From positions 496,001-560,000 of the forward strand of contig OZ176052.1 in the NCBI GenBank assembly GCA_964247055.1: 64,000 nt of DNA, in the 5' to 3' direction. Below the pieces are notes generated by a model. That model saw only the letters and a list, made by a program, of their open reading frames with translations. It was not told where the DNA came from and did not search any database. Both the position numbers and the translations under genes were made by a program. This document shows positions 1,804 to 22,090 of the stretch, piece after piece; the stretch's first letter is position 1, and every line of letters begins with the position of its first letter. Source of the stretch: Paragordius varius. Its lineage: Eukaryota; Animalia; Nematomorpha.

Positions 1804-2084
1804 ATCAATTATTATTATCCCTATTTTTTAAATAAATGTTTTATATTCACTAGATTTATTTTAAACTTTTAATGGTTAAATAGGTTCATGAGGGCCTTCA
1901 TTGTATTATTTCTATCTATTGATTTTTAAACGCCATAGAACATTAAAATTTAGTAATAATTTGCCTAATGACATTTGTTTTCCATTTTTAATAATACTAC
2001 TTAATTAATATTCACTCAAGTATGTTTTCAATCACATTATCTCATATAAATTAGATATGGAAATGTCAGAAAAGAATAAAAGTA

Positions 2085-4215
2085 AATAATGAAAAAAGAA
2101 CGAATTTAAATGCTGTGTTTGTTTAATACTAGAGTAATGACTTATTCATATTTGTTAATGTTTTTTTGATGTGGGGGATTAGATCCAATGATCCAAATGA
2201 GCTCCATAGTTCAGAGCTATAAAAAATGGTACTGCTTACCATTTGCTCGATGATCGTGGATGGTTCTTGTGCTCGGCATAAATTATTAATGATTAAGTCA
2301 TTTTTTGGATGCCAAACACCAAGAGTTCCAACCACCAGATTTCTATACTCTTGTATCGCGTTTCCATTATTGGCATGTATTTGTCAAATTTATTTTGAAA
2401 GGCATCGTTCAAGGATTGGGATTTGTTTTCGAATTGGCAGATCACATCGTTTATATAGCAGTTATTTTTATTGGTTACTATCAGGTCGGGTTTCAAGCGC
2501 AATTGGGTTGGGGAAGGAATTTTCATGTAATATTCTTGTGTCCTCGTTAATATGAGTTTTCAGAATTTGCAGACATGCATTGTGGAGTTTAATCCAGTGC
2601 GGAGAGTATCGAAGGCAATGATTCAACACATGGGGGAGTGTTTATATGCCTTCCCACATCTCCTGCACAATGGATTTTTAGTCGACCCTGGACGGCTGTT
2701 CACAGGCAGCAGATTAAGGGGTGCCTTGTTAATAAACCGTCAGGTTTTGAAGGATGTATACGTTCCGGTCAGGGTAAAGTGAGATGAGACAGGATGATGT
2801 TGGATGGCCTCAATCACTTTACCCTGATTAGGACAGTCAGTTAATGATTGTAAGCTGTGTTTAGCATATCTTTTGGATAGGGATAGTATAATAATTTTTC
2901 AGGCATTCGGGTCGATGTTTACCGAGTGCCCTTTTATGAAGGGTATGGAATTTTGAAATTCCCATGCCAGGTCAAGTCTTTTAGAGGCTTGCCTGGCTTT
3001 TGTATATATGGATAAGCATCCTGTCGTTTTGATTTGTATTTCATTATTTAAGTATTGGTTTAATTGAATATCGTTAGTGGTGGTTGACTTTGTATGTCCA
3101 GATACGGTATGTTTTAAATCATTAATCGCTTGAGCTGCTAAATATTGATCATGAGACGTTAATAGTTTGTAAGTTGAATCAATTATAAAGTTGTCATGCA
3201 GGTTTGCTAGCTGTGGCAGACCAAGTCCGCCTGCTTTGGTGGGGGCATAGAAATAGTTAGTATTGGCTGTTGGGGGTAATGCTGTTCTTTTTTTATCTGG
3301 GAACGAATTTTATTATCTGATTTGGTTAGCTCGGTTTTTTTTATTGCTTCCATTCTGAGGGAGTGGATAATGGTGGGAAATATGAATGTTTTAAGGAAGT
3401 CTAATTTTTGCCACGGTGCCAGATTCGATTGTGTTATATTGTTTACCAGGTTATCCAGTTCTTGGATTTTAAGGGGGTGCTAAGGGCGACATTGGTTTGT
3501 CAAGGTATGAAATGGATTTTCCTTCAGAGATTTGCTCGATGATTTGATTATGTATGGTTATTGTAGGATTTGGCGAGTTAATACTAAGAAGAGCAGATTT
3601 GTTGGCATTTATTGTTATGTTATGTGATTGAAGCCAATGCTCTGCGGTGAGGATGGTTTTTTGGAGAGCATCGGCTTGGTGCGCGATAATTACCAAATCA
3701 TCGGCATACGCAAGGGATGTGGAGGATGTGATTAACAACTCTAAGAGAGGGTTGATGGCCAGGTTGAATAACGTTCCGGAGACAAGACAGCCCTGTTTAA
3801 TGCCCTTGTGAAATGGAATAGGATCTGTGAGTCCGGCTTGCGTATATATTTGGGTTTTAAAGTTGGTTATATTTTGAATAATAATATTTTTAATGTTGTG
3901 TTTATTGGAATTTGACAAATTGTATTAATAAGTATGTTATGGGGAATTGAGTCAAAGGCCTTGTTGATATCGAGAAATGCTATAAATAGTCTATGCTTAT
4001 CTTGTTTCACACTCTTAATTTTTTGTTCAATCACATAGTTGTGCTCTAATACCCCATCAAAGGGCATAAAGCCTTTTTGAATAGAGTAAATTAAGGTTTT
4101 GTCTATTATGGTTTTGAGTAAGGTTTGGTTCACATATTTAAAGAAAATTCTATAGTTTATTAAATATAGTTATGGGTCTAAAAATGTTTATGTCGTTTAT
4201 GTTACCCTTTTTGTG
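2085..4215 (-). mobile_element. Utopia-like (R2/NeSL clade, RLE) non-LTR retrotransposon, 5'-truncated and decayed, subfamily A
   Basis: Minus-strand fragments: HKKGNINDINIFRPI, QKGFMPFDGVLEH, FLDINKAFDSIPH, KGIKQGCLVSGTLFNLAINPLL, LAYADDLV, CCHC region, KPDLIVTNKNNCYINDV (PD..D endonuclease). The 3' UTR matches that of 4218-5691. Confidence 0.9.
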
Positions 4216-4217
4216 CC

Positions 4218-5691
4218 TCGAGCAAATCTCTGAAGAAAAATCCATCTCATACCTTGGCAAACCAATTTCGCTCTTAGCACCCCCCAAAAATACCCAAGAA
4301 CTGGATAACCTGGTTGACAATATAATACAATCCAATCTGGCACCGTGGCAGAAATTAGACTGCCTTAAAACATTCATTTTTCCTACCATTATCCACTCCC
4401 TCAGAGTGGGAGCATTGAAAAAAACCGATCTAACTAAATCTGATAATAAGATTCGATCTCTGATCAAAAAAATTACAGCCTTACCCGCCAGTGCCAATAC
4501 CAATTATTTCTACGCACCCACAAAAGCTGGCGATCTCGGTTTATCTCAGCTTGGCATTCTACATGATGCATATTTAATTGACTCAACTTACAAACTCCTC
4601 ACTTCTCCCGATGAAAAATTAGCAGACCAAACCAAAATCCATCTTAAACATACAATAGCTAAACATACAAACTCAACCTCCACTAACGATACTGAGTTAA
4701 ACCAATACTTCAATAATGAAATACAGATCAAAACTACTGGATGCTCATCCTTATACACCAAAGCCAGGCAAGCCTCTAAAAGGCTTGACCTGGCATGGGA
4801 ATTTCAAAATTCCATACCCTTCATAAAAGGGCACTCGGTAAACATCGACCCGAATGCCTGAAAAATTATTATACTATCCCTATCCAAAAGATATGTTAAA
4901 CACAGCTTACAATCATTAACTGACTGTCCTAATCAAAGTAAAGTGATTGAGGCCATCCAACATCATCCTGCCTCATCTCACTTTACCCTGACCGGAACAT
5001 ATACATCGTTCAAAACCTGGCGGTTTATTCACAAGGCTCGCCTTAATCTGCTGCCTGTGAATAGCCGTCCAGGGTCAGCTAAAAATCCATTGTGCAGGAG
5101 ATGTGGGAAGGCATATAAATACTCCCCCATGTGTTGAATCATTGCCTTCGATACTCTCCGCACTGGATTAAACGCGACAATGCATGTCTGCAAATTTTGA
5201 AAACTCATATTAACGAGGGTACAAGATTATTACATGAAAATTCCTTCCCCAACCCAATTGCCCTTGAAACCCGACCTGATAGTAACCAATAAAAATGACT
5301 ATATAATCGATGTGATCTGCCAATTCGAAAACAAATCCCAATCCTTGAACGATGCCTCAAAATAAAATTGACAAATACAATCAGTTGATACCATTAATGC
5401 AAACACAATACAAAAGTATAGAACGCTGGTAGTCGGAGCTCTTGGTGCTAGGCATCCAAAAAATGACTTGATCATTAATAAATCATGCCGAGCACGAGAA
5501 GCATTCACGATCTTTGTAAGCAGTATCAACTTTTTTATCTTATCCAATGATTATATTTGATCTAATCCTCACCATACATCAAAAAATCTTAACAAATATG
5601 AATAAGTTATTACTATAGTATTAAACAAACACATCATTTATATTCGTTCTTTATTTCCTTCTTAAAATCTAAACATATTTAATAAAATCAT
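4218..5691 (+). mobile_element. Utopia-like non-LTR retrotransposon, 5'-truncated, subfamily A, followed directly by the U2 3' part
   Basis: ORFs 4172-4861 (SYLG, LAPWQKLDCLK, GDLGL) and 4943-5137 (WRFIHKARLNLLPVN, CRRCG). It is an inverted homologue of 2085-3545. The 3' end abuts TCTGTTCTT of U2 at 5692. Confidence 0.92.
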
Positions 5692-5836
5692 TCTGTTCTT
5701 ATTGGCCTAATACCTGATACGACCGCTAAAGAGGTCAATGATATTATTTTTTGGAGATTTTGGGAAGGTGCTCTGAGATTGCCTATCCCTTTCCATCGGG
5801 TCAACCTGGTATTGCGGTGCCTCCAAATGTCGCCCA
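5692..5836 (+). pseudogene. U2: U2 snRNA 3' portion (from nt ~40), 5' end missing
   Basis: tctgttcttattggcctaatacctgatacgacc...ttttggag...gggtcaacctggtattgcggtgcctcca aligns to the intact U2 at 30792-30941. Confidence 0.92.
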
Positions 5837-7254
5837 AACACAATCATTTTAATTTTTTTTAAACAAATAGATAAAATCAGTCTTAAGAATGTGTATCTAT
5901 ATCAAGCCACTTCTATATATACCGGAGATCACTAAAACTCCAAAAATAAAAAAAAACATTAGGGACCGAAAAATTTTAAGTGATATTTTAACAAATTGAC
6001 AAACATACTTGGGTCAACAATTAAAGTGTGATAAAATGGTTTGCCAACACAAAAAATATTACTATTATTTAGTGAGAATTACGAATTCACTAAAAAGTAA
6101 AATAATTTTTATAGCGTTAAAAATAATAAGGTGTCAAGAAAATAAATATTAAAATTCAAATATAAAATTTATAATTCTTAATGGTACTCAAGGCGTACCA
6201 AGAAAAGGGGGTAGCAGACCCACGTCGCCCTCTGTCCACAAAAGACGTCCCTTGTTGCCCTTCCATACACGAGTCAATGGTAGTTCAATGACAGCCGTCT
6301 AGTTACGTCGAGGTTCGGGTTGACTTCTAGGGATATAATGATAAGTTTTATATATAAGACAAGTATAAAATAAAATCAAGAAATATTTGATATTTTACAC
6401 GTAAAATAAATCTTATCAACTATATCCTATATGTTTATACTAATAGGATTTTATAGCAAAACATTCTTAAAAATATAACGTATGTATATTCTAACTTAAT
6501 TTAACCGAGTGCCTATTTATCATATTGTTACAGTATTTATCTTGATTAATACGATTTTGTAGATCATTATTTAACTTTAATTAGTGTGTGTTTTGCTAGT
6601 AATATGTAATTCCGTTTTTAGTGTTTAGGTTTTTTTAGATCATAAATTCCAATTGGCATTCATAAAATCTGGATATTTAAATCAAATTTTCTTCCTTTAT
6701 ATTATTAATTTGAACATTTAAAGACAGATAAAATTGAAGTTTCATCAATCAATATCATAATTTAAATAACTTCTTTTCCTTGTAATACCTTGTTAACATG
6801 CCTTCGTAATCATTATCTTTTATCTTTAAATACAAGTTGTAATTTCCCTTTATAATATGATTGCTACATTTAAAATTCCGCATAACTTTGAAGTGTTATC
6901 TTTGGCATACGCCTATATAAAATTAATGTCAAGCATCCAGCATATTTTTATTATTATTTTTTTTGCAAAATATCGTGTTTATAAATAAGGCTAAAATTAA
7001 ATTTATTTTTTTAGTAAATCATATTTTACATTAAACAGAAAAAGTGGTATATTTTGCATTATTTTTATATTTAGCTTATGCAGACATGTCATGTTGGCTA
7101 AATTTTTACCTTTGGGTTTTACCTCTGAATAAGTAATATTAAGTATTTTTGAATAAATATCTTATTATATTTCTTGTCATTAATGCTATATAAGTGCAAG
7201 ATTTTACTAGGTTATCAATTTATTCTATATTTTTTGAAATACTTAATAAACAAG

Positions 7255-7322
7255 CCAGTGTAACTAAATACCCCAATTTGAATCGAAGGACTGAAATGAA
7301 AGCGTTGTAATCAAGTGTTAAT
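7255..7322 (-). repeat. Solo left end of piggyBac-like MITE family P1
   Basis: ataccccaatttgaatcgaaggactgaaatgaaagcgttgtaatcaagtgttaa is the reverse complement of the P1 left terminus. Confidence 0.7.
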
Positions 7323-7694
7323 CCACCCGTTTATTAAGACTAATGATCATTACAATATATTTGTAATTTGTTTTTTTGTCCACTGAGTACTTATAATACT
7401 TTTAAGCAATTTTAATTAGTAATTCTAATCGACATATTTTATGATCAGTTAATTACGCCTTTTTTATTTTTTGGATTCGATCTCGTTTACAGCAAAAATT
7501 TATCCATTCAACATATGATGTGCACATTTGTTTTGGCCTAATTCTATTGTTGGCTAATTGGTAACACAGTAGCTCGTGTTAAACAAATTTTGTTCATATT
7601 AAAAATGTTATAAAAATACAAAAAAATGTATAATTTCGAACATTTTGAAGTTATATTGTTTAAAAGTTTCCAAATTGTTTTCAATAATTGTGTT

Positions 7695-7843
7695 TGCGCC
7701 ACTCCTGGAGGTACTGCAATACCAGGTTGACCCGATGGAAAAAGATAGGCAAGCCCAGAGCGCTTCACCAAAATCTCCAAAAATAATCGTATATCATGGA
7801 CCTCTTTAGAGATCGTATCAGATAATAAACTTATAAGAACAGA
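7695..7843 (-). pseudogene. U2: U2 snRNA 3' portion (from nt ~40), 5' end missing
   Basis: The reverse complement begins tctgttcttat and keeps the Sm site (atttttgg), stem III and stem IV (cctggtattgcagtacctccagg). Confidence 0.93.
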
Positions 7844-10102
7844 TTTTATTTATTATATATATGTGTGATTAATTATAACATATTTTTCAATAGATTGATC
7901 AACGCTGGCTATAAAATGAAGTCTTGCAAATTTATATATTAAATTTTTAATAAATTTTGAAATATATTTTACGTTATAAAAATGGGGAAGAAACCCCGGA
8001 CGGGATTGGAAAAAAACTATCCCAAAGCAATCTTTGGTTGATCCTGTTGGTTTGATTCTCGCACAATTCCGTTTCCATTCGACGTCTGTTGATTGTATTA
8101 TTGAGGAATTGACCAAAGTAACAGTGCTGAGTCCTGTTGTCATTTGTGATGTTGATTGATAATGATCACCATTGGTTGGGTTCTAGGTATATGTTTGGGC
8201 ACTAGCTAAGAATTGGTCGGAATCTCTGTCGGGAAGTTCCTCCATTTTTAAACCCGTACCAGAGCCGTGATGAGTGTCGTATTGTAAAACTTATCATCAG
8301 GCTTCCAAGCCAAAAAAAATAGAGAAACTGGGTGTAATATGCTTCGACCATTCGTCGTTTTTCGGATACCATGATCCTAAACTTCCGACGACTAGTGTAA
8401 ATATTTTGACTTTGTTTGAGTTATCAGATAATAAGGACATTAAAGGGGTATATTTTTCCACCTAATTGTTCCAGAAGGCCTCCAACCGATCATCTAAAGG
8501 ACAGTCACATCGATGATATAGATTATCCCTCGGTATTTAGCCACTAGATCTAGTTTAAGGGGGAGGGAAGCTGGGTAGGAGTTCTCAAATATATTTTCAA
8601 CGCCACAAGAATGTGTTTTAATTATATTGACGATGAAATCATGCCGAGCTTTCCATGAACGCGAATATCTTAAACAATGAATAAAAAGGGGTAAAGTTTC
8701 CAGGTGACGCCTGCATCGTCGACATGAGGGTTGTGAGAAGAACCTGGATGCGCGTTCGTAGGAAGTAGATTAAATCGGGGCTCGATAATGAGTCTTCAAT
8801 CCCGAAAAAAAGTACCTCACCCGAAGGTTATAAATGAGGAGCTGGCTTTGTGGAAGAAAACTACCTCGATAGCACGGCTTTGGGATGGACACGCGATAAG
8901 GCTGTTTAAAAACGAACAAGTATATTTAGAATAAATTGGATGAACAAGTACGCGACACGACAAGTCAATATTAAGCTTTCTTTTATAAAGAGCTGGGAAT
9001 TAAATTATTAAGATTGGATGCCAAGCGAGATTGGCTGAAGATGTTGAAGGTTAAGATTGTTTAAACCTGATAAAAATTCAAAGGTCTTGGATTCAAAAGG
9101 GGTTTCAAATTTTTTCCTTTAAGAAATGGTGGCTAGAAGAGTAGAATAGGCGTGTTCAGAATGAACGGATCAGAGCTAGTTAGGAGCCTGAGTCAGTCTT
9201 TATATATCGGGAAGAAAAAATGTTTTAGAGACGTCTAGACCTGCTTCAAAGACTGGGATGTAATAGTGGATGTTCATTGAGAAAGCGATGTGATTTTCTT
9301 TGGAGTATGAAGACACCGAACCCATACGAAATTTATGGATCAGTGTACAAACGTTTTTAAAGCATCCAGCATCTGCCTTCAGGTTGGATGAACTATCATA
9401 AGTTGTCGGGAGGAACCACAATCCTATCTGGCTTATCATGAGTCTGGCCTTCCTGCAGAGTGGGAACCACGTGTCCATCTATCTCTATATGTGAAGTGGC
9501 TAAACTCCCTATGTAAGATATATGTTTAATAATTTTTATTTAAACGGTAGAGCAAACTGGCCCTAGAAAGGAATTGGCCACGAATGCACCATTAATCATT
9601 ATTATTGGATATGATTAAAAGTCATCTGCATAAGCGAGACTAGTGGTGTAATGAGTGTTGTTCAGGGAGGATATCAGAAGATTGATGACTGAATTAAAAA
9701 GATGGGGGAAAGAGGACATCCTTGGTAAGTTCCTCTTTTAAGAAAAATGAAGAAGGGTTGGCTCGTTTAAATTGCGAGTGTAGGAATTAAAGAAAAGATT
9801 AAACAGAATTGAAAACAAATTATCAGACATAACTATACCGCGAAGGTATATTATAAAATGGCGGAGGGAATCAAAAGAAGCAGCATCGAGCCCCAGAAGG
9901 AAGCAAGGGTGTCGATGATGCCGAAGACAATTTGTGAATGAGAAATGTTCGAGAATTCCATTATAAAGTATGAATCCTTTCTGATGGGGAAAACAATAAT
10001 TTTGGAAAGATAAATGGAGAGAGACTTTAAATAATGATAGAGATATTCTGTAGCTGGTGTCTAAAAGCAAAATGGGCCTAGGCGGAATTAGCAGCGTCGC
10101 CC
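7844..10102 (-). mobile_element. Utopia-like non-LTR retrotransposon, 5'-truncated, heavily decayed, subfamily B
   Basis: The minus strand starts at a GDAANSA..PILLLDTSYRI RT motif, then QKGFILYNGILEH and FDSL. The downstream part is homologous to 10100-11234. The 3' end abuts U2 TCTGTTCTT at 7843. Confidence 0.85.
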
Positions 10103-11234
10103 AACTTGTTTCGTAAAATTTATTCTAAATTTACTAATTCGTTTTTAAAAAACCTTATCGCGTGTCCTTCGCAAGGCCGTGCCATCGAAGCAACCTCCCT
10201 ACACAAAGCTAGCTCCTCATTTATTACAGCCGGATCAGGCATTTCTTTTCGAGATTGGAGATTTATCCATCGGGCCCGCCTTAACTTACTTCCAACAAAC
10301 ACGCGACCCGGCTCTTCGCATAACCCCCCTGTCGGCGATGCGGGCGCCATCCTGAAACACTACCCCATATTTTTAACCATTGTTTTAGATATTCGCGCGT
10401 TCATAGAGAGCTCGGCATTCGTCACTATATTAAAAACACATTTTTCTTGTGGCGTTGAAATCATATCCGAGAACTCCTACCTAGCCTCCCTCCCCTATAA
10501 ACCTGATTTAGTGATTAAATTCCGCGGCATTATATACATCATCGACGTGACCTGTCCTTTCGATGATCGGTTGGCGGCCTTGGCTGGAAAAATAAGGTGA
10601 AAAAATTTACCTCTTTAATTCCCTTATTGTCTAATAACTCAAACGAAGTCAAGATACTCCCACTGGTGGTGGGAAGTTTAGGATCATGGTACCCAAAAAA
10701 CGACGAAGGTTAAAGAATATTACATCTAGTTCCTCTATTTCTCGGCTCAGAAGCCTGATGATAAGTTCTACAATACGACACTCATCACGGCTCTGGTACG
10801 AATTTAAAAATGGAGGAACTCCCGACAGAGATATAACCTCTAACCCGGCCCATGTACTTAGAACACAACCAATAGTGATCTTTTTCAATTAACATCACAA
10901 ATGATACCAGGACTTAGCCCTATTACTTTGGTCAATCTTTCAACAATACAACAATTGAATGAAAACTAAATTGTGCGAGATCAAATCAACCAACAGGATC
11001 AAACAAAGATTACTTTGGGAGAGTTTTTTTAACCACTTCCAGGGTTTTTTTCTCCTATTTTTTTCCTCTATTGGAAATTATTTTTTTACACGTAAAATAT
11101 TTTTATGACAAAATTTATTATAAATTTAAAATATTGATTCGTAAGTCTTCATTTCATAGCCAACAATGATTAATATATTAAAAAATACATTATAACTTAT
11201 ATTATACATATATTATATGTAAAATAAGTAAAAA
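10100..11234 (+). mobile_element. Utopia-like non-LTR retrotransposon, 5'-truncated, subfamily B
   Basis: ORF 10106-10600 has FRDWRFIHRARLNLLPTN and YKPDLVIKFRGIIYIIDVTCPFD. The 3' UTR is followed by the U2 3' part at 11235. Confidence 0.9.
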
Positions 11235-11381
11235 TCTATTCCTATCAGTTTAATATGTAATACGACCTCTATAGAGGTCCATGATACTAAATTAATTTTT
11301 GGCAAATTTCGGGAGGCGCTTTGAGCTTGCCTATTTCTCCCCATCAGGTCAACCTGGTATTGCAGTATCTCCAGGAGCTCA
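11235..11381 (+). pseudogene. U2: U2 snRNA 3' portion (from nt ~40)
   Basis: tctattcctatcagtttaatatgtaatacgacctctatagaggtcc...cctggtattgcagtatctccagg aligns to the intact U2. Confidence 0.92.
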
Positions 11382-11599
11382 AACACAATCATTTAAACCA
11401 TTTTAAAAACCTTTTTGAAACAAATAATTTTTAACAAACTTTATAAAAAAATGATGATAGAAAAATGAAAAGTTTATAAGGATGATAATGTTGTGTATGT
11501 TATGATTTAAACAAATCAGTTATAATGTCTATCAATATCAGGCCACTTTTCTATTTATACCAGGAACCAAAACTCCAAAAACAAAAAAAAACATATCTT

Positions 11600-11930
11600 A
11601 TTCCGCAATTACAATCCCAATTTAAAACAGTCCGGATTCTTCCACTAATCGTAGGAGCATTAGGTGCATGGCAACCAAAAAATATTATTCTTAATAAACT
11701 CTGCTCACCGCTAGATGCTCAAATAATTCGCAAGCAAATAGTAAGCAGTACCATTTTCTACAGCTCAAAAATATGGAGATTCTCAAAAAATTATGTAGGA
11801 AATATATAACCACCTTATTTTAAATAATCTATAAAATAATCAATTTATTCTCAGTACTATAACAAGTATAGCATTTATTATTTCTTCAACATTTGATATA
11901 ATCCTTGTAGTATAAAGTAATAATACACAC
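11600..11930 (+). mobile_element. Short 3' fragment of a Utopia-like element (endonuclease C-terminus plus A-like 3' UTR)
   Basis: VRILPLIVGALGAWQPKNIILNKLC..IRKQIVSSTIFYSSKIW parallels the C-terminus of copy 2085-4215 (MVGTLGVWHPKNDLIINNLC...VSSTIFYSSELW). Confidence 0.8.

Positions 11931-11936
<6 letters not shown>

Positions 11937-11990
<54 letters not shown>
11937..11990. repeat. (AT)n microsatellite
   Basis: Perfect run of AT dinucleotides. Confidence 0.95.
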
Positions 11991-11993
<3 letters not shown>

Positions 11994-12019
11994 ACAATAT
12001 ATAATTTTTTTGTCCTTAT

Positions 12020-12478
12020 TTACATTTTGGGGCAGTTTTATATCCCAGAGCTCAATTTTGTAAATAAATTACAGCTTTGGTTATTTTAGTTAAAATTGAA
12101 TTATCAATTTCTTTGTAGTTTACAGTTTTGTGACTTCTAGAGTCTAGAATTGTGACGCCTCCAAAACACTATATAAACGAACAAGTGATATAAAATACAG
12201 CAAGTATTTGCTGGTAAAATGTAGCCTGAAAGCTTTTTAAAGTTAAATATAATTATTGTTGCATTGGCGATTTAAATAAAATTATTGAAAAAATTAGCGG
12301 CATAATTGAGACGAATTTTTTTACTATTTTACATTGTATAAAATTTTTGAATGCGCCTAAAAGACTAAAGAAAGCATTTTAAATTTAGCTTAATACCTTA
12401 AATACTTTTAAGATATATATATATATATACAAATGGCTCTGGTATAGAAAATACCCCAAAAGGTAATGGTGTTTTAAA
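12020..12478. mobile_element. MITE family P2 with ttgggg(c/t)a(g/t)ttt terminal inverted motifs, probably TTAA-type
   Basis: Colinear homologue at ~42545-43075 (tacagttttgtgacttctag..., aatgcgcctaaaag.ctaaagaaagc). Inverted ttggggcagttt / aaataccccaa motifs lie near the ends. Confidence 0.65.
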
Positions 12479-12482
12479 TAAA

Positions 12483-12597
12483 TTTGTGTTTTTCAGCTTA
12501 ATATTAATACTACTTCTAAAGAGGTCCCTAATAACCTTATTTTTGGAGATTTTGGGGAGGATTTTCTAAACTTGCCTATCCATTCCCATCAGGTCAA
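12483..12597 (+). pseudogene. U2: Degenerate U2 snRNA 3' portion
   Basis: tttgtgtttttcagcttaatattaatactacttctaaagaggtcc...atttttggagatttggggagg...cttgcctatccattcccatcaggtcaa. Confidence 0.85.
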
Positions 12598-15049
12598 TTG
12601 TTACAATAAAATATAGAAATTAAAAATAAATGTAGTGTTTTAACGAATATGTTATTTTTGTTTTAAAATTTTTAAATAATTTCAATAAAAGGCAACTCCA
12701 AAAAATAACATTATGGAGAGTATGTGATCAAAAATATTATGTCTAAATGACAAACATATTTAAAGGTATTGGTATAAAATAAAAAAATGAAAATGCATTC
12801 AATGTATGGATTAACTCATCATGATGGTATCATAAATCATTGTTTGCGCATTTTATAATTATTTACACATTTTTGCTTATCATGAATTTAGTATTATACG
12901 TTTCATTGGATATGTAATTAGAATCTGTGAAAAATGATATGCTAATCACTCCTACACTAAGGCGTGTAAAATGGTAAAAGGCGGTAAAGGTCGTCCTATG
13001 TGGACGTTATATTGGGAAAAAACCTTTTAAATTTTTTACTGAAATTTTTATAAATGCAAATTTTTGCAGATATATTTTATGTTATCATGTTTTAATTTTT
13101 TATTAACTGTAAATAGTGTTATTAAATTTGATTATTATATCAAAAGAGAATTAAAAAATACCGTACACAAGGTGCGCTTTGGAAAGGACATTGTTTATTT
13201 TTGCATCAGAGGTTTGTTATTGATTGAGCTGTTGATTATTGGTTCTAATTAATTAAAACGTTAACAATAAAAAACAATAATAATTTTACCCATATACGAT
13301 AACCTAAATAAAATTTATAAAAATAAACTTAACTTTTATTATGAATGGATTCATATCCGAGTTACAGTAAAACTTCATCATCTTTATATTGCACTCTTTA
13401 CAAAATGATACCCATATTCCTAAAGTATAGATAAAAAAAGTATATGGCTTTGGTGCGCACTTATCATATTCATAATGCAGACGATCTTGAGCGAATCGCC
13501 TGATTTCAAAAAATCCATGCGGTTTTGTCGTTTTCAGCTGACAACATCGATAGATACCACGAGGTAAAATACAAGATTTAAAAAGTTGGGTATTTAAATA
13601 GTGAAAGAAATGTGCGTTAATAAGATGGTTTTGTGTTTGTTAAATAAATTTTTAATTAAAAAACGGAAATAAAAGGAGGAAGAGTTGTAAAAAAACAAAA
13701 AAATGAGTGAGAGAAACAGCAATCAATTTTAAAAAAATTAATTTTTAAAAAATAGTTCATATCGAACTTCTCAACGCAATTTCTGTTACATTATTTGGTT
13801 CTATGGCTAAAATTAAAGTTTTATTAAAATCTATCTACATTGTAACCAGAAAAAGTGTTTTGTTTTGCAACATTCCGGTTTATTTATAAAATAATTATCA
13901 AGTATATTAATAAATTTTGATTTCTCGTATGTAAGTATTCCTCTTTTTTAATATTAAATTTTGACAGTGGGGTTACTATCGACCCCAAAATTGAAGGATT
14001 AAAATGAATGTGTTATATCCAAGTGTTATATATAAAAATATATGTGATTTTTGTGTTACTATATGCATTTATATTCTAAGTCCAATTTTCCATGCTCTTA
14101 CCATTATAACTAGTGCAAACATTTCATCACCTTTTTATTGTTTCAACGCATTTCGTGGAATTTTTATAACCCAGAGCTTAAACTTAAAAAAATTACTGAT
14201 ATGAAAGTTGTTCAAGTTTATTGATTTATCAAACATTATGTTACGTATGGAAAAATCTTGTATTTTTTTAGTTTTTGTCTTCTAAATTCGTTTGGACAGC
14301 TTCAAAACACGGTTATAAACGTCTATATTTAAATTAAAAATAAAAAAATTTATTATGTTGAATTGGGTTAAAATATAACTAAGTTGTGTCTCTACGGGTA
14401 TATTTATATATTTTTAAATGGATGATTGTCAATTAATTAAAGTAGAATGTTATTTGCATTATACTTTTAATCCATTCGCCGCACTAAGACTTCTAATTGC
14501 AAAGATAAACTAAGAAAATAATCCTCATAACATGTTTTATATTTTATAATTTTAAATAACAAAATATAGGACTAGAAATTTATAAGCTTTTCTTTTTGTT
14601 GTCAATTATCTCAGTTATTTATTTTTTAACTATTTTCACTTTTTAAGGTGATAACTGGAAAGAATTAAGGGGTTTATTAATTATCAACTTGTAATAAAAC
14701 CGCTTATTGAGATAGTAAAAAAAATGCATTTTTGCGCTTTTTCTTTCTTTTAATCAATAATTATCTTTATTCTTTGCAAGATTAACAATCAGGCAATCAT
14801 TACTTACATATCTGTAAATAAAAAAGGTAATAAATTTTAGGCCCCCACTCAAAATAGAAAGGGGGATTAAATTTACTATAAATTATATAAAAGGGCCCCT
14901 GTTTTGCCTTGGGCCTCTCCGCACTGCTCCTCCTAGCTCCCCGTAATTTCAATTTTATGTATTGTTTGCGGCTTCAAGATCTTGTGAGATAGAAATATTT
15001 TCTTTTGATATAAATGCATTCCATTTTTTGTTTCGAATGTTAGCGTGAT

Positions 15050-15830
15050 TTCTGAGGACACTGTTGTCTTGACCATATATGACAATAGACCCTGCGTTCT
15101 AAGGCTTTTCTGATCTCCATCCTTTCTCTATAATTTTTTATAAGAACCTTCAGCCTTGGAACAAATTGACGAGTCTGTTTTATTTCGTTATCTATGAACT
15201 CGAATTTGGCCATGATATTGGGCCATTGGGGTGTCTTTAGAGAAAGACTTCTGATGGTGTATGCCTAATTGCACTGTGTAGTTTTGATTCGATATCCTTA
15301 TAAATTGTTTCTATTGCTTTGTGTCTATGCATGTTTTCAGTTTTTATAAATTTAGGTTGCAGTAAATCTTAAAACTAATCCATTAACTTTAGACTCACTA
15401 AAATATGTTTATTAATATTATGTAACGTATTTCTGAATTTATGGATGTTAAATACGTCCCGTTATCAGTCACCGTTTATCTCAAGACCTAAATCTTTCCA
15501 TATTTTTTTAAGCAATTCAATATTTTGTGATGTTATTGATTTTAGTAATTCCACTTCAACCTATCTGATAGCACTATCAATCGCGATTAACCAAAAATAC
15601 CCCTCTATGGGCCCGGCTATGTCAAGATCAATCATCTCCCACAACGTGGTGTTGGGTCTCATTCTCACGTATAGGATTTACTTCATATTAGGTTTGTTCT
15701 TTTTACACGGTTCACATTATTCTTCAAAATTTTCTTGTTTGTAAACATGGCCAATATAAGGAATATCTCGCTTATTGTTCATCATTTGCAATCCGTCATG
15801 CCCAGTATGTTAGATACGTCCCGCTGTATG
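15050..15830 (-). pseudogene. Gypsy-type LTR retrotransposon integrase remnant
   Basis: The minus-strand translation with stops and frameshifts gives HHCC-like TGHDG...CEPCKKNK, WEMIDLDIAGPIEGYFWLIAIDSA, and later HTPSEVFL*RHP. Confidence 0.75.
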
Positions 15831-15976
15831 TCGGTATAAGTATTCTATCATTCCCAAATAAAAGATTATAGTATATTAAGTTTTAATATTTATTTTGTAT
15901 TTCTAAATTTTATTTAAAACGTTTGTTCAACAAAATTTTGGTGCATTTTAAACACAATTAATATTTAACATGAATA

Positions 15977-16560
15977 TATACCATTTACACTTCAAGAGTG
16001 TCCTTGAACACTTCAAGTTGGTCCTTGAACAATTCAAGTTGGTCCTTACAATTCAAGTTGGTCCTTGAACATTTCAAGTTGGTCCTTAAACACTTAAAGT
16101 TCCTTAAAAATTATAAATTTTGATTTAAGCAAAATTTTTGCATTTATTTTTTTATTTTATTATTTATTGAACTAATTTTCTTTTTTTATATATTTATTCA
16201 TTCAAAAAATTTAATTAAAAAACCACTATTTTGTTTCAAACTATTTTTTTCAATTGAACAAAATTATTGAGTTTTAAATGTTTTTAAGGAATAATTTTAA
16301 TTAATAACCCAGAAAACTTATATATTTTTTCATATCGTGTTTAAATCTTTTACATATCCCAAATTATTTTAAAAAATTATTAAAAATATACGGTTTCTCA
16401 AAAATTAAAAGTTATCGATTTAAAATTAATGTTAAATAATAGAAAATAGGTTAAAAAACAATAAAATAGATGAATTATTTACGATTTGATTGATAAAGGT
16501 TAAAAACAAAAAAGTCAAAGGACCAACTTGAACTTTCTACCATTTTAACCACCAAATTTC
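15977..16560. mobile_element. MITE family M2 (TA-TACCATTT termini, ~21-bp subterminal repeats), right end eroded
   Basis: tataccatttacacttcaagagtgtccttgaacacttcaagttggtcc repeated; the inverted unit ggaccaacttgaac lies near 16520. Homologous to 48459-49024. Confidence 0.75.
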
Positions 16561-16589
16561 AGAAAACAGTTGACTTCGCTCTGTCTCGT

Positions 16590-17871
16590 ATATTTCAAAA
16601 TTTTCATCAAATAATTAGAAATTATTAATGTCTCCAATATTTCAGCTAATTTCGTACGGCATCGTGCGTCTCGGTCTCCTCTATAGGACTACTCCAATTA
16701 GCACTTTTTTATAAAAGGGTAACAACCTTAACATTAACCCATCCTCCTGCCGCCTTGTTCGAACTATTTAGTCTAAAAAAATTCTTCGTTTTTACATAGC
16801 CTTATCGCGCGTCAATCCCAAGCTCGCATCGAGGCGGCTTCCCTGCCCTAGACCAGTTCCTCTTTCAAAACATCCGGGGTAGGATTCAAAATTGAAGATT
16901 CATTGAATCAACTCAAATCTACACCCTACAAACACTCGTCCAGGTTCCCGCATCATCGCAATAGTGATGCTAGCGGCACCCACTTTACCACATATCTTTA
17001 ATCAGTGCTAAGATTTCTTACGAATAAATAGCTCACTATTACATCGTCTTTATGATTACTTTAAACATTTTTATGTTGCGTTGAAGTTTTGTCCGACTAC
17101 TCTTATCCGGCTACCCTTCCTCTTTATTATATTTAATAATAAATATCACGGTATTCATTTTCTAATTAACGTGACCTACCTTGATGAACGCAGGGGGGCT
17201 TTGGTCTCAACCTGTATCAATAAGGTGGACAAATACACCCTTGCTAATACCCTTATTGTCTCAAAACTCAACCGATGTCAAGATACTTCCGCTGATCTAC
17301 GGAAGTTTATGATAACGGTATTCCAAAAACGACCAACATCCGAAATATTTAACACCTTGTTACTTGATTTTCGGTTCAGAAGCCTGATGATTAGTTCAAC
17401 AATATGGCTCCTATAACAGCTCTGGTCCTAGTAAAATGGTAGCTATCAAAACCGTTTTTACAAGCGCCATGGCTAATTAAGTTCATTAGCCACAGCTTAA
17501 ACATCAACACAGCCAATCATTGCTCATCACCTCCAATCAGCAACACAGATGCTACTTGAACATAGCTCTGTTAGGGTGAAGCTTTGAACGAAACATTTAA
17601 CAAATCAAAACAAATATGCTGCAATCAGACCAACAACAGGATCAACCAATTCCCTTGGAGGAATTTTTCAACCCTGCTCGGGGTTTTTCATTCATATTTT
17701 TTTCCATGAGTGTTATTTTACATAAAACATTTTTACAAAATTTATTATAAAATAATCATAAATTCATGTTTCCATCCCATAATCCAGCATTCACCAATCA
17801 ACCTATGTAAAAAAATATTATATTTAACCTAACTGACCTTTTTTTAATGTATACATTGTAAATTAAATATA
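16590..17871 (+). mobile_element. Utopia-like element remnant, subfamily B, heavily decayed
   Basis: DNA homology to 10100-11234 and 8000-9000 (cagccttatcgcg.gtc.atcccaag, agaagcctgatgat.agtt, caacaggatcaacc). Followed by a U2 remnant. Confidence 0.8.
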
Positions 17872-17960
17872 TATGTTTTATCACTTATAGCTGATACGGC
17901 CATTAAAGAAATCCATAATAATAAATAAATTTATTTTTGGAGATTTCGGGGAGGCGCTCA
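17872..17960 (+). pseudogene. U2: Degenerate U2 snRNA 3' portion, truncated by a MITE
   Basis: tatgttttatcacttatagctgatacggcc...atttatttttggagatttcggggaggcgctc. Confidence 0.8.
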
Positions 17961-17974
17961 CTTTGATCACTATA

Positions 17975-18680
17975 TATATACCATTTAAATTTCAAATTCA
18001 CTCTTAAAATAAATTATAAAGTTTCGGCCAACTACAAGAGTGTCCTTGAACATTTTAAGTTGCTTGAACAATTCAAGTTGCTCCTTTAACTTTTTTGTTT
18101 TGTTTAATTTTTATCAATCAAATAGTAAATAATTCATCTATTTTATTGTTATTAACCTATTTTCTATTCTTTACATAAATTAAATCGATATCAATTGTTA
18201 ATATTTAACAAACCGTATATAATTATTAATTTTTTAAAATAATTCCGGATATTTATAAGATTTTAAAAAAATATACAAGTTTTCCGGGTTATTTATTGAA
18301 ATTTTCACTAAAAACATTTAAAAGTCAATAATTTTGTTTAATTGAAAAAAAAATAATTTAATGGTTTATCAATAAAAAAATTTTAAATATATAATAAAGA
18401 AAATTAGGGTAATAAATAATAAAATTAATGCAAAAATTATGGTTAAATCAAAATTAAATTTTAAGGACCAACTTGAAGTGTTCAAGGACCAACTTGAACT
18501 GCTCAAGGAACAACTTGTAGTGTTCAAGGACACTCTTGAAGTACAAACGGTATATCTTTGTGGCATAGTTTTTTATTTTTTCAGTAATAATTTAATTTAA
18601 AACATTTCATTTAAAATACAGTTGAATTGTTTGAGGGTGATTTGTTCAAGGGCAAATTTAAATCGTAAGTGGTATAAATA
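17975..18680. mobile_element. Nested MITEs of families M3 and M2
   Basis: M3-type ends at ~17975 (tataccatttaaatttcaaattcactc) and ~18630-18675 (gagggtgatttgttcaagggc...gtggtata) enclose an M2 copy at ~18030-18553 with inverted 21-bp subrepeats. Confidence 0.65.
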
Positions 18681-18719
18681 TTGGATTGAAGAGATGAAGC
18701 TTTAATTTAAGATGCGCAA

Positions 18720-18758
18720 AATAGAGGTCGTATTAAATGTAAAAACTGAGGGGAATAA
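18720..18758 (-). pseudogene. U2: Short U2 remnant (stem IIa/IIb region)
   Basis: Reverse complement tttattccctcagtttttacatttaatacgacctctat resembles U2 nt 40-78 and lies directly after an A-type Utopia 3' UTR (18759-18900). Confidence 0.6.
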
Positions 18759-21180
18759 ATTATATTTTTACAAATGTGTTTAGGTGTTGCCATAATATAT
18801 TATATAAATGGAAGAATAAGAAAAAGGAACTAATACAAATCCTATATTGTTTAATACTATTAAGATAATAAATTAATTATATTTATGAAATGTTTGAATG
18901 TACAGTAAAAATTGAAATTATACGGACAAAACGTAAAAATATAAAGACAAAATTTTTATTTCAAAAGACAGCCATATCGTTATAATTCTTAATTTATCCT
19001 AAAAATCATTAAACACAATTGTAAGATACATAATTGATTATGTTACTAATACACACATATATTTCATATTTTAAATTTTAAAACAACGAGTTATATTTAA
19101 AAAGTATGGTCTTTTGGAAAAAAATATCTGTCTTTATATTCTTACGTTTTGTCCGTATAATTTCATTTTTTACTGTAATGTGTATTGGTTTAGTTTTTAA
19201 ATATAATTTTTTATGAATGTGTTCTATACTTCTGAGATATAAAAGATGGTGCTGCTTCCTATTTGTTTGCATAAGCCATTCTTTATATGTCATCATCAAT
19301 ATTTTTTTTGTGCTTGTATTAGGGGTAGAATACTGTTGGTATTTATCATTTTTTTATTATAGTGAATAATTTCAAAAGGACAATGCATCTATTTCAAAGC
19401 AATTACCTTTAATATTAATTATATAAGGGTTGTTGTGTTGAAAAGGTGTGTTTTCATAAACTAATTTGGTGTTTTATAAATACAGGCATGCGTTATGCCT
19501 TTTTGTCCAGTGTGGTATTGAAGGCAATGGTTAAGCTGATGTGGAGTTTCATTTGCCTTGCCATTTTATTACCATGAGTTTTCATGTTTGGGCCACTATT
19601 CACAGGTAACAGTTTTCGGCGATTTTTGTGGATAAATCAGCCAGCCGGTTTTGACATGTATTTCCCGTCTGGATATGTTAATATATTGGTAATTTTTATA
19701 TTGAAACGTACATAATTTATTTTAGGGTGAGTTTGATATTCAAGAATGAATTCGTATTGTTCAAATAAGAAATTGAATTATTCACGGGTGAATTAGAGGT
19801 GTAAATGGTAAATCACTGAAAGAAAAAAGAAGTTGAAAAGGAAGGGCATTTATTGACTATGTAATACCATACTACTACGTTATATTCTTTCCCTTCATTA
19901 GTAAATAGTAAAAATAATTATTATTTGATGCGCATGGTAATGCTTACTCGTGCACCATGGCCCTTCGTTTCTTTTTTATTTTCAGTAATATTTATTTTTT
20001 ACTCCTAATATTAATTTCTTTACTACAAATATTCTTTTATTTAATCCACTGTAATCCACCAGAATTGGTTTCACTATAGAAATAAGCGTTAGTTTCACCT
20101 TGCGGGAAAAATGTAAGGGACTTGAGATTTGTGCGAAGATGAGTCAATCAAAGATATATCTGATTATAGAAAGATTTCCAAACAAAGCTTTTGATGATTA
20201 GTCAGTAAACAGCTGTCGCATTTTTGCCAAGGAGTCATGAAAGAGAGGATACAATTTACCGATAAAAAAGCTAATTTGTATGGAACAATCAATCCAACAA
20301 GTTAACCCAAAAATAACGGGACTCATCGAGCAGGCATGGGGTTAGGTGATCGTTGCTAGAAAATTCAAATGGTCGTAAGCAGTTGGAGGCGGTTCATATT
20401 ATTTTAAAACCGATCGAATTAAGAGAGATTGAGTGAGTCTGACTGACTCCGGCTTCATGGCGTCAGGGCTATCTGCGATGATGGTAAGGTCGTCTGCGAA
20501 GGCCAAGCATGAGGTAAGGGGTTGATTGTTAAGGGCTACGACAATGGGATTAATGCAAAGGTTAAAAATTAGACCTGAAAGTGGGCACACCCTTGCTTAA
20601 TTCCTTTAAGATAGTGGATCGGGGGTCGGTAAGATTATCATCAATTAAAAGGGTTGATGAATTAAGTAAAATAAAGGTTAGAAGGCATTCAACCGGTGGG
20701 GGCAGACCGAGGGACCTTAAAAGTTGTGAACAGACAGGGTGGGGAATGGGTCGAAAACGGCGGAGATGTCTAATCATAAGAAAATGGATTGATGGTTCGC
20801 AGTTCGGGCTTTCGACAGGCGATTGGAATTGTAAAAATTAATGTTCAACACGCCATCAAAAGAGGAAAAAGCCTTTTTGTTGGAGGGCGATCAGGTTATG
20901 GAGGGACACATGGTGGCTAATGTGTTTATGAAGGATTTTTGTGAAGACGCGGTAAATAATGTTGGTGATAGCGATGGGGCGAAAGTTGGCCGGGTCAGAG
21001 GTGTTGCCTTCTTTATGAAAATTCGTGGAAATTCATGTATATATGAAGTCAAAAAAAATAATTTGGATGGATATCCCGCTACAAGCGTATTCAATCTATT
21101 CTAAGAAACAAACTTAAAAAATGGTTTGGAAATTTTATTTGAAAACAAATTTGTGGATTTTTTTCCTATAAGCCTGACGT
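18759..21180 (-). mobile_element. Utopia-like element, decayed, A-like 3' UTR, interrupted by a MITE at 18901-19177
   Basis: RT motifs [43 protein letters not shown]; CCHC remnant ETPHQLNHC at ~19500-19560; endonuclease C-terminal remnant at ~19200-19330. Confidence 0.82.
18901..19177. mobile_element. MITE family M1 (TA-CAGTAAAAATTGAAATTATACGGACAAAACG termini), Tc1/mariner-like
   Basis: Near-perfect ~50-bp terminal inverted repeats flanked by TA. Many further copies, for example 38763-39006, 45419-45724, 52072-52449, 53380-53679, 54690-54982, 55620-55922 and 57925-58211. Confidence 0.85.
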
Positions 21181-21239
21181 GGTGTTGAGATCTTTGAATG
21201 CCTTAGACATAATCGATGCCAATATTTTTGACAAAAAAT

Positions 21240-22090
21240 TAACAGGCCTTATTATTATCAAAAAGAAATTAAGAATGCCGCCTCTCAAGCCTTATTTTCA
21301 TCCTTTGTATCAACCAAATCATAGCTACATTAAATATCAAACCCCTGACTTCGGGCGCAGATGACCTTACCAAAATTTTTAAAACATCTCTGCCTGATAT
21401 TCCAGACTTGCAATCCTTTTCCATTTTAATCCATAAAAAAGGCGACACCTCCGACCCCTCCAATTTTCGCCCCATCGCAATTTCTAACATAATCTATCGA
21501 ATCTTTGCTAAAATCATCCATAAATTCCTCAGCCACCATGTAGCCCTCCACAATCTGATCGCCCCTCAACAAAAAGGGTTTTCCCCCTTCGACGGCGTGT
21601 TGGAACATAATTATTACATTTCCAACCGCTTGTCGAAGGCCCGAACAGCGAACCACCAGACCATCTTTCTATGGCTGGACGTTTCCGTCGCCTTCGACTC
21701 CATTCCCCTGCCTGTCTGCACCAAACTTTTAACGTCCCTTGGCCTGCCCCCACCCCTTGAAAGCCTTTTAAATTTTATTTTACTTAACTCTTCTACTCAA
21801 TTTTTAATCACCTTACCTACCCCCCATCCCCTATCTTAAAGGAATCAAGCAGGGGTGCCCTCTTTCCGGCCTAATCTTTAACCTCTGTATTAACCCCATT
21901 ATCGTAGCCCTAAACAATCGACCCCTCACCTCATGCTTGGCCTTCGCGGACGACCTTACTATCATCAGAGATAGCCCCGACTCTATGAAGTTATCTTCAA
22001 TTGATATAAAAATAATCCTAATTATAAATCGCACTCCAATGACTTAGGACCCATTCAATTATGTATCGACAACCATTCAATCCTTGATGG
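21240..22090 (+). mobile_element. Utopia-like RT remnant, inverted homologue of ~20400-21100, 3' part lost
   Basis: ORF 21408-21839 IHKKGDTSDPSNFRPIAISNIIYRIF...QQKGFSPFDGVLEHN...WLDVSVAFDSIP, then [17 protein letters not shown] and AFADDLTII. Confidence 0.88.

Follow-up and report, generated by a model that had tools for sequence, protein, structure and literature searches.

This locus raises the question of how two copies of a site-specific retrotransposon come to lie head to head, with the same half of the target gene at both outer ends. The window, a stretch of 64,000 nucleotides of Paragordius varius (contig OZ176052.1, positions 496,001 to 560,000), holds three inverted pairs of such copies associated with U2 snRNA genes. 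R2 and related site-specific elements, which have a restriction-like endonuclease, now serve to write transgenes into genomes. To our knowledge, aberrant insertion outcomes of these elements, such as snap-back and the joining of cut ends, have so far come only from somatic cell experiments. The dimers described here would be their fixed germ-line counterpart in a natural host, and the known target lets the primed strand and the target half be read for each arm.

Identity of the elements and their target site

The elements encode a reverse transcriptase (RT; RVT_1 match at E = 2.6e-33) and a putative CCHC and PD..D/E..K-like C-terminus. An N-terminal C2H2 finger is matched weakly. Downstream of the RT, a CRRCG motif and PDLI(V)...D motifs were seen in the ORFs by eye, and no endonuclease profile matched there. 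The 3' end of the element abuts U2 at nt 38/39. All five U2 fragments in the window begin at U2 nt 38-40, and most U2 matches genome-wide begin at query position 158-160, which corresponds to the same nucleotides. Judged by sequence, we assign the elements to Utopia, a non-LTR retrotransposon whose insertion site is U2 nt 38/39 and whose endonuclease is of the restriction-like kind.

A natural full-length copy, refA (C3:359100-363900, minus strand; element at refA 197-4537), served as the ruler for arm coordinates. It is flanked by U2 nt 1-37 on one side and by U2 nt 39-195 on the other; the two full-length copies refA and refB are both bounded by U2 1-37/38 and 38/39-195. The genome holds around 33 U2 3' halves against five 5' halves, and U2 units occur in both orientations in the cluster. 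Among Rfam families, only U2 was found at the arm ends at E <= 1, and no ribozyme.

Kojima and Jurka (2015, PMC4640811) described Utopia as non-LTR retrotransposons that carry a restriction-like endonuclease and are specific for U2 snRNA genes. The elements observed here resemble them in several respects. The first 38 nt are missing from the disrupted U2, which directly adjoins the 3' end of the element, and disrupted U2 copies outnumber intact ones. A single ORF carries an N-terminal zinc finger, the RT, and a putative C-terminal CCHC and PD..D/E..K region. Target-site duplications are absent, as in the arthropod families.

Anatomy of the three pairs

The features of the pairs and of the neighboring solo copy and U2 sequences are collected in Table 1.

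Table 1. Inverted Utopia pairs, U2 sequences and associated features, in window positions.
Feature	Position	Strand	Remarks
U2 downstream-flank remnant, outer left side of pair 1	1800-2027		direct match to 30274-30496
Pair 1 long arm, Utopia family A	2085-4215	-	refA ~2309 to near 3' end (2309-4350); RVT_1 matches
Pair 1 short arm	4216-5691	+	refA 2986 to 3' end (2986-4700)
U2 3' half on pair 1 short arm	5692 to 5842-5848	+	from U2 nt 39/40
U2 3' half on pair 2 long arm	7689-7844	-	U2 match
Pair 2 long arm, Utopia family C	7845-10102	-	5' end GGGCGACGC..., 8 nt downstream of homologous pair 1 breakpoint
Pair 2 short arm	10104-11233	+	begins at long-arm position 1154
U2 3' half on pair 2 short arm	11234-11388	+	U2 match
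Solo 5'-truncated copy related to family C (65-67% identity)	16650-17959	+	U2 3' fragment 17870-17959; outside pair 3
Pair 3 left arm, Utopia family D	19589-21017	-	RT-to-thumb part verified, left limit provisional; 5' end at same His codon as pair 1
Pair 3 spacer	21018-21366		patchwork, 349-414 bp
Pair 3 right arm	21367-21990	+	begins ~65-87 nt upstream of His codon; 3'-truncated
Intact U2 gene	30786-30980	-	177.7 bits, full model; reference for target site and flanks

The initial annotation had described pairs 1 and 2 as 5'-truncated copies joined directly at their 5' ends, and this is what we observe. The joint of pair 1 is blunt, within 1-2 nt (4215|4216-4218), and that of pair 2 is 10102|10104. 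The arms of pair 1, put at 85-90% identity by eye, are 86.0% identical over 1472 bp (2085-3539 against the reverse complement of 4218-5663). The 5' end of the long arm coincides with the first nucleotide of the His codon in the RT motif ILIHKxG..NFRPI. As annotated, a U2 3' part was matched on the right of this pair and none on the left. On the left, ~290 bp of flank is gone along with the U2 3' half, and the remnant that is present has the expected mirror orientation relative to the sequence downstream of the intact U2 gene. In pair 2, positions 7648-8949 are 77% identical to the reverse complement of 10104-11430, and the U2 3' parts annotated at both outer ends were both matched.

The description of pair 3 was borne out only in part. 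It is an inverted pair (80% identity between 20453-21017 and 21432-21990), but its arms are not joined directly, since a spacer intervenes. The U2 part that had been placed on its left is absent from the minus strand there; the nearby U2 fragment is on the plus strand and belongs to the solo copy, whose body covers ~16650-17869. The right arm ends at the refA equivalent of ~2970 and is not followed by U2. A MITE-like dispersed repeat at ~19817-20055 breaks up the left arm. In the paralogous copies, the spacer is ~190 bp longer and holds two sense-oriented fragments of the element, one of 175 nt from the 3' region and one of 94 nt from the RT. We also considered whether the short arm of pair 2 has its 5' end in common with the solo copy (16754), and rejected this: the solo copy runs at least 60-100 bp further upstream.

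Recurrence of the joints in the U2 cluster

None of the three structures is an assembly artefact or a product of chance. Misassembly is excluded because every junction is found again in paralogues that have diverged and that lie on the same contig (2, 3 and 6 copies for pairs 1, 2 and 3, respectively) and because short contigs of two independent short-read runs, X3 (4042-4247) and X6 (4126-4276), bridge position 4216.

Five junction types are present in the 270 kb U2/Utopia cluster, in two (I), three (II), three (III), two (IV) and six (V) copies; only the coordinates are known of the type III paralogues, one copy of type IV and the full-length copies of family D. Pairs 1 and 2 lie within one segmental duplication of at least 12 kb. 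Window positions 578-7199 are colinear with C3:310277-316866 at 85-88% identity, and a copy of pair 2 lies 5.7 kb further along in both duplicated segments. Inverted segmental duplications are abundant in the region, including those of non-Utopia DNA.

The joints are old, and each is present in 2-6 segmentally duplicated copies, so that copy counts overstate recurrence. The pair 1 (type I) joint is probably a flipped type II dimer with a secondary, blunt central deletion of ~1 kb. As type I has this appearance, we place the apparent number of independent origins at at least three, one per family (A, C and D). Head-to-head joining had been proposed to be recurrent, and its presence in three different Utopia families agrees with this.

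Breakpoints and junction fillers

Two features of the junctions are newly seen here. The first is a breakpoint shared by three families, in which one arm ends no more than 9 nt from the start of the RT domain. This common breakpoint, at refA 2309 and 2317, lies at a GGG, the first G+C clamp that follows a very A+T-rich stretch. At type V junctions, the arm that ends at this hot spot is the shorter one, so there the hot spot would act as a landing site, whereas in types III and IV it would be the end of a cDNA. No solo copy truncated at the hot spot was found in family A or family B. Two candidate explanations were rejected. The hot spot shares only a 5-mer and an 8-mer with the U2 target site or the element 3' end, which is chance level, and a stable RNA structure upstream of it, acting as a roadblock for the RT, found no support in the z-scores (-0.6 and -1.0). 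A breakpoint common to three families may point to pausing, to the end of an RNA or to a fragile site.

The second feature is the presence of fillers at two junctions, all in the sense orientation of the adjacent arm. The type II filler comprises 34-37 nt from refA ~3188-3221, with GATAA(A)ATAA microhomology; the type V fillers, of 175 nt and 94 nt, are element-derived. Taken by their sequence, such fillers point to serial template switching. With regard to microhomology elsewhere, type I is blunt, and type III has a possible 5-6 nt match (GTCGC) at an offset of 2-3 nt, in arms that have diverged.

Divergence of arms, U2 halves and flanks

In type III, the U2 halves are 82.4% identical and the arms 83.1%; in type IV, the values are 82.7% and 85.9%. 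In one type II copy (II_384), the mirrored flanks are 86.7% identical and the arms 86.8%. Flanks mirrored 320-650 bp beyond U2 are as alike as the arms. Divergence is about the same for arms, U2 halves and mirrored flanks, although this clock is blurred by gene conversion: every arm shows 14-23% divergence and is a mosaic of gene-conversion tracts. Equal divergence implies that both sides were nearly identical when the dimer formed. From the clock of the U2 halves and flanks alone, we infer that the arms were identical at formation. Such near-identity favors a fold-back, whether between sister chromatids, between identical units or through a hairpin made by cDNA snap-back, rather than an event at two unrelated U2 genes.

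The two arms differ in their distance to extant full-length copies. In family A, one arm is 88-93% identical to these and the other 76-79%; in family D, the values are 92-93% and 84-85%. To account for this inequality, either active copies must have served as donors in conversion, or the two arms must differ in origin. We rejected two arguments for different origins. An excess of third codon positions among the arm-arm differences (47-57%) could be taken as proof of two source RNAs. Paralogous copies of a single arm show the same excess among themselves; we therefore attribute it to gene conversion from active copies and give it no decisive weight. Likewise, the 'alpha' and 'beta' subfamilies of family A could be read as two independent hetero-dimers; the flip relation between types I and II makes them look like the arms of one old dimer, with conversion tracts.

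Origin of the joints

Our preferred reading, which we hold tentatively and at a little less than an even chance, is that these are old, genuine head-to-head joints of 5'-truncated Utopia copies that arose by fold-back resolution of an insertion intermediate. The 3' end of each arm would still be fused to the U2 3' half that primed its reverse transcription, and the broken U2 end carrying the first-strand cDNA would not have been joined to its own U2 5' half. The 3' end of the cDNA may have snapped back and primed the second strand, leaving a hairpin that was later replicated (route a), or the cDNA-tipped end may have been joined to its cDNA-bearing counterpart on the sister chromatid or in an identical U2 unit (route b). 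Either route would produce an inverted duplication of the element 3' part, the U2 3' half and the downstream flank, with loss of the U2 5' half and arms of unequal length. Unequal arms, a long one and then a short one that restarts further 3', are the layout expected of a hairpin with a loop. The sense-oriented fillers, the excess of U2 3' over 5' halves and the R2 and L1 precedents compared below also speak for this reading. It counts against a fold-back that it would yield a dicentric or a terminal inverted duplication, so that further repair would be needed for survival. Also against it are the type V layout, in which the hot-spot arm is the shorter, the unequal distances of the family A and D arms to full-length copies, the considerable divergence of all arms, and the inverted duplications of non-Utopia DNA, which make a general process at the DNA level available. 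The joints would have formed during rather than after retrotransposition, by route (a) or route (b). Formation would have occurred at least once in each of families A, C and D. The dimers would then have been copied by large segmental duplications in both orientations and flipped; central deletions would have shortened them (pair 1), and gene conversion would have patched them.

An origin purely at the DNA level seems to us somewhat unlikely. A solo insertion, 5'-truncated or full-length, with its U2 half and flank would have undergone inverted duplication, through replication fold-back or a hairpin-capped break, or two inverted insertions would have lost the DNA between them; deletions after breakage at the palindrome center would later have produced the unequal arms. 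The equal divergence of arms, U2 halves and flanks fits an inverted duplication, and the cluster is full of inverted segmental duplications, also of non-Utopia DNA. The pair 1 joint, best read as a ~1 kb central deletion, suggests that palindromes were indeed revised at the DNA level, and a structure-specific nuclease could cut a breathing hairpin at the GGG clamp that follows the A+T-rich stretch. However, this origin leaves unexplained the sense orientation of all three fillers (34-37, 94 and 175 nt), which derive from 0.5-1.5 kb away. It also does not explain recurrence in three or four Utopia families with the breakpoint always inside the element. If the joints were only later DNA rearrangements, they would represent ordinary repeat-cluster decay.

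The initial annotation had proposed two target-primed reverse transcription (TPRT) reactions on two U2 genes or sister chromatids, followed by joining of the cDNAs. The outward-facing primed ends and U2 3' halves agree with this proposal; the version with two different U2 genes is weakened by the equal divergence. In that version, which we consider improbable, the two reactions would have taken place on different, divergent U2 genes of one chromosome, and the interval with both U2 5' halves would have been deleted when the cDNA-tipped ends were joined. The head-to-head geometry and the U2 units in both orientations fit it, and L1 ends from two independent retrotransposition cuts do join to give translocations (PMC11702581). 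The unequal distances of the family A and D arms to full-length copies and the third-position enrichment could also be cited in its favor, but the latter, as noted, extends to paralogues of one arm. The two targets would have to be identical units, since mirrored flanks and U2 halves match the divergence of the arms, whereas the flanks of other U2 units compared within the window are only 74-81% alike. Moreover, a tandem snRNA array would contain no divergent pairs before the first inversion.

Chimeric fold-back long reads are a negligible explanation: palindromic junctions are a known long-read artefact, but these arms differ by 14-23%, each junction is present in 2-6 diverged paralogues, and the short-read contigs crossing 4216 already refute it for pair 1.

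A broader proposal extends the fold-back reading. Utopia intermediates may recurrently end as germ-line fold-backs with a preferred breakpoint at the RT start, and the palindromes may have seeded a breakage-fusion-bridge-like amplification that built the 270 kb cluster; we regard this combination as unlikely, and put it forward as speculation. The dimers may explain the excess of U2 3' over 5' halves and the change of the snRNA array into a patchwork of inverted duplications. If fold-backs of this kind do recur in the germ line, the site specificity of the element would let the dimers show directly that both arms were primed on one and the same target half. They would then reveal, in a natural setting, how inverted structures of retroelements come about, those of Penelope-like elements among them.

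Comparison with known systems

We found no description of such dimers for Utopia, as the initial annotation had supposed. Tandem insertions are reported in PMC4640811, and the words 'inverted' and 'head-to-head' are absent from it; here, in contrast, inverted dimers account for 8 of the 11 family A copies extending as far as the RT start.

R2 proteins, of a related R2-type class of non-LTR elements with a restriction-like endonuclease, form cDNA snap-back junctions in human cells (PRINT), in which the added sequence is the complement either of the cDNA itself or of target DNA close by (PMC11371274). Those events are somatic, short-range and scored from reads. In the Utopia dimers, the inverted copy takes in the entire 3' part and continues through the U2 half into 650 bp or more of flank, and it has become fixed in the germ line; next to the inverted part, no U2 5' half was seen.

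For L1, an unligated end bearing cDNA self-anneals to a hairpin or is tethered to the sister chromatid, and replication or fusion then gives a foldback junction (PMC11702581). These junctions carry inverted reverse-transcribed sequence, and template switching precedes end joining (PMC11702581). L1 is an APE-type element without site specificity, and the work was performed in cultured cells; Utopia is site-specific, and so both outer flanks can be read as the same target half. Twin priming of L1 (5' inversion) also gives a head-to-head junction inside one insertion. It uses both strands of one target, joins segments that overlap barely or not at all, and keeps both flanks and the target-site duplication. 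In the Utopia dimers, by contrast, the two arms have 1.1-2 kb of element coordinates in common and the flank on either side is a U2 3' half, which upholds the distinction from twin priming drawn earlier.

The closest parallel in layout is found in Penelope-like elements (PMC8557442), where an inverted 5'-truncated copy lies directly beside the 5' end of another copy, with the 3' ends facing outward. These belong to a different class of retroelement, with a GIY-YIG endonuclease, whereas Utopia is a non-LTR element.

Target site and structure of the dimers

The insertion site matches that of Utopia. Sensitive BLAST detected five U2 fragments in the window (three partial matches with Rfam), all of which begin at U2 nt 38-40. 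Across the genome, about 33 U2 matches begin at nt 38-40, and the upstream region together with U2 nt 1-37 is covered by only five matches; four are uninterrupted. U2 genes disrupted by Utopia lack the 5'-terminal 38 bp and adjoin the 3' UTR of the element (Kojima and Jurka 2015, PMC4640811). ORFs within the arms (the two Utopia copies of each dimer) match RVT_1, with CCHC and PD..D-like motifs located downstream. The coordinate ruler was refA, a natural full-length copy with a part of U2 on each side. It was used as found in the genome, with no consensus and no frame repair. The element occupies refA 197-4537, and its ORF of 999 aa has RVT_1 at aa 467-707 and a weak match to a C2H2 finger.

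Pairs 1, 2, and 3 belong to families A, C, and D, respectively, which share no DNA similarity. The initial annotation described inverted copies joined directly at their truncated ends. This was borne out for pair 1, which has a blunt joint, and the arms of pair 2 are likewise inverted, with the reported U2 3' half at each outer end. The arms of pair 3 are inverted as described, but a spacer lies between them; the right arm ends at approximately refA-equivalent 2970. The U2 part previously placed to the left of pair 3 is absent, as there is no minus-strand U2 sequence on that side. The U2 fragment at 17870-17959 was ruled out as this flank; it is on the plus strand and is part of a solo copy starting near 16650. 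This solo copy and the U2 fragment are enclosed by a 500-bp inverted repeat, of which a third copy was also observed.

Positions of junctions and other features (window coordinates unless a contig or ruler is named; the window is C3:496001-560000 of genome G000)
Feature	Position	Strand	Remarks
Ruler refA (family A)	C3:359100-363900	minus	
Reference refB (family B)	C3:403947-408437		
Intact U2 gene	30786-30980	minus	Rfam, 177.7 bits; sole intact U2 found by Rfam in window
Pair 1 arms	2085-3539; reverse complement of 4218-5663		86.0% identity; left arm refA 2309-4350, right arm refA 2986-4700
Pair 2 arms	7648-8949; reverse complement of 10104-11430		77% identity; joint at 10102/10104
Pair 3 arms	20453-21017; 21432-21990		80% identity
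Type I (pair 1)	refA 2309 joined to 2986		family A; 2 copies
Type II (no window pair)	refA 2076, filler, 2261		family A; 3 copies
Type III (pair 2)	position 1 joined to long-arm position 1154		family C; 3 copies, one inverted
Type IV (no window pair)	position 438, 26 nt, position 1		family C; 2 copies
Type V (pair 3)	patchwork spacer between arms		family D; 6 copies
500-bp inverted repeat	16033-16532; 18072-18540		78% identity
500-bp repeat, third copy	48557-49014		
Family A 3' fragment, then U2 3' fragment	11596-11824; 12482-12597		refA 4158-4395 (family A fragment)
Recurrences of pair 2 with both fragments	C3:256-258 kb; 320-322 kb; 447-450 kb		
Head-to-head family B copies	C1:14727193-14728204 / 14728340-14728721	minus / plus	
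Head-to-head family B copies	C2:11959688-11960563 / 11961417-11962248	minus / plus	from coordinates alone
MITE-like repeats (among others)	18901-19178; 38764-39008; 45419-45720; 52132-52450; 55622-55923		
U2/Utopia near contig ends	C4:7230-8481; C6:8530-10000; C8:6827-9489		
U2/Utopia near contig ends	C6:10102477-10107269; C1:15223064-15223350		contig ends at 10113835 and 15230783

Junction types and their paralogues

The joints are not assembly artefacts, yet they are not unique events either. Misassembly at 4216 was checked, and short contigs of runs X3 (4042-4247) and X6 (4126-4276; filed under another organism label) bridge this position. Genome searches recovered every joint of the window in further, diverged copies elsewhere on contig C3. 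C3:310277-316866 is colinear with window 578-7199 at 85-88% identity, and a pair 2 copy lies 5.7 kb further on in both places; pairs 1 and 2 thus move as a unit within a segmental duplication that spans at least 12 kb. All dimers are old. Several of the paralogues, as well as the full-length copies of family D, are known from coordinates alone. Directly downstream of pair 2 lie a family A 3' fragment and then a further U2 3' fragment, and this trio recurs elsewhere on the contig.

Family A arms are mosaics. The same two copies are about 70% identical in one 150-bp window and 99-100% in the adjacent one, and these abrupt jumps point to gene conversion. The type I right arm and flank run colinear, in reverse, with the left arm and its flank in the 454-458 kb copy (2.5 kb at 81.5%). 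In type I the left flank, likewise reversed, is 91% identical to the flank on the right of the 388-390 kb copy, and the two arm types of the family pair up consistently when type I is flipped onto type II. From these three flipped matches, type I appears to be a type II dimer from whose centre about 1 kb has been lost. The number of independent origins is put at no fewer than three (families A, C, and D) and at most five.

Breakpoint hot spot and fillers

One arm of types I and V terminates on the first nucleotide of the His codon in ILIHKxG..NFRPI (refA 2309). Types III and IV have one arm whose end, at GGGCGACGC, is 8 nt downstream of the equivalent position. This hot spot coincides with the start of the Pfam RVT_1 model (aa 467, refA nt 2306). 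It is not an alignment effect, since the arm adjoins the other arm in types I, III, and IV, which makes these boundaries sharp. Two more arm ends are found 48 and about 87 nt upstream. At the site, families A, B, and D carry an oligo(A) stretch and then GGG; in family C, available only downstream of the break, the GGG side alone is visible. No target-like sequence, stable RNA fold, or Rfam family was found at the hot spot, and no solo copies of families A or B were truncated there.

The type II filler (34-37 nt) has the sense of the adjacent arm and is copied from refA ~3188-3221, and the return to refA ~2255 falls within GATAA(A)ATAA microhomology. Type V contains sense fragments of 175 nt (source 630-810 nt before the 3' end of the element) and 94 nt (source RT).

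Origin of the joints

The arms are 83.1% alike in type III and the U2 halves 82.4%; the corresponding values for type IV are 85.9% and 82.7%. In the type II copy at 384 kb, the arms (86.8%) compare with mirrored flanks 320-650 bp beyond U2 (86.7%). Each U2 half is 87-91% identical to the intact gene, so that neutral decay since formation explains the whole arm-to-arm difference. On these values, arms, U2 halves, and flanks would have been near-identical at formation. The arm-to-arm differences show an excess at third codon positions; this was rejected as decisive evidence, as the same excess exists between paralogous copies of one arm.

On both outer sides, the flank consists of the same target half. 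Together with the equal age of the parts, this fits a fold-back origin. By one route, a cDNA hairpin would form and be replicated later; by another, an end would be joined to its equivalent on the sister chromatid or on an identical unit. In cells, snap-back cDNA is produced by R2 proteins (PMC11371274), and L1 intermediates yield foldbacks through cDNA self-annealing or sister tethering (PMC11702581). An origin at the DNA level only, without reverse transcription, is possible, given that the region is rich in inverted duplications, that palindrome revision is seen in type I, and that the first G+C clamp, where the hot spot lies, could be a site of hairpin cleavage. The version of the initial annotation in which cDNAs primed on two different U2 genes were joined is less likely than fold-back because it requires two identical units. 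Twin priming, already doubted there, is excluded by the same-half flanks, as is priming of both strands at a single cut.

In line with the initial annotation, no description for Utopia was found: Kojima and Jurka 2015 (PMC4640811) reports tandem insertions and mentions no inverted ones. In a 2026 survey of R2, the words "inverted" and "head-to-head" are both absent. Snap-back and foldback outcomes are already known, and the dimers are therefore a new variant of these. They are fixed in the germ line and are legible thanks to a known target.

Family B and genomic setting

A fourth family, B, is young and widespread. Its reference copy, refB, occupies the same U2 site as family A without DNA similarity to it, and further copies are found on contigs C5, C6, C7, C2, C1, and C11. 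Over a 901-bp query, eight or more copies show 97-100% identity, and family B was thus probably active recently. Its inverted pairs on C1 and C2 have ends away from the RT-start hot spot.

A repeat of extremely high copy number occupies window 1500-1899 and 6900-7299, with a summed contig depth of 10^5-10^6, compared with values between a few hundred and about 2,000 for the dimer (run X1). Positions 1803-1805 are linked with 7032-7137 in many contigs, and this repeat family therefore borders pair 1 on either side, in inverted orientation. The window also contains dispersed MITE-like repeats, palindromic and about 230-300 bp long, and one copy interrupts the left arm of pair 3 (about 19817-20055). 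One such family has dozens of matches (79-93% identity) across all large contigs. U2 genes and Utopia copies also lie 7-9 kb from several contig ends and are 95-99% like the cluster copies; this likeness and their position suggest a shared subtelomeric block.
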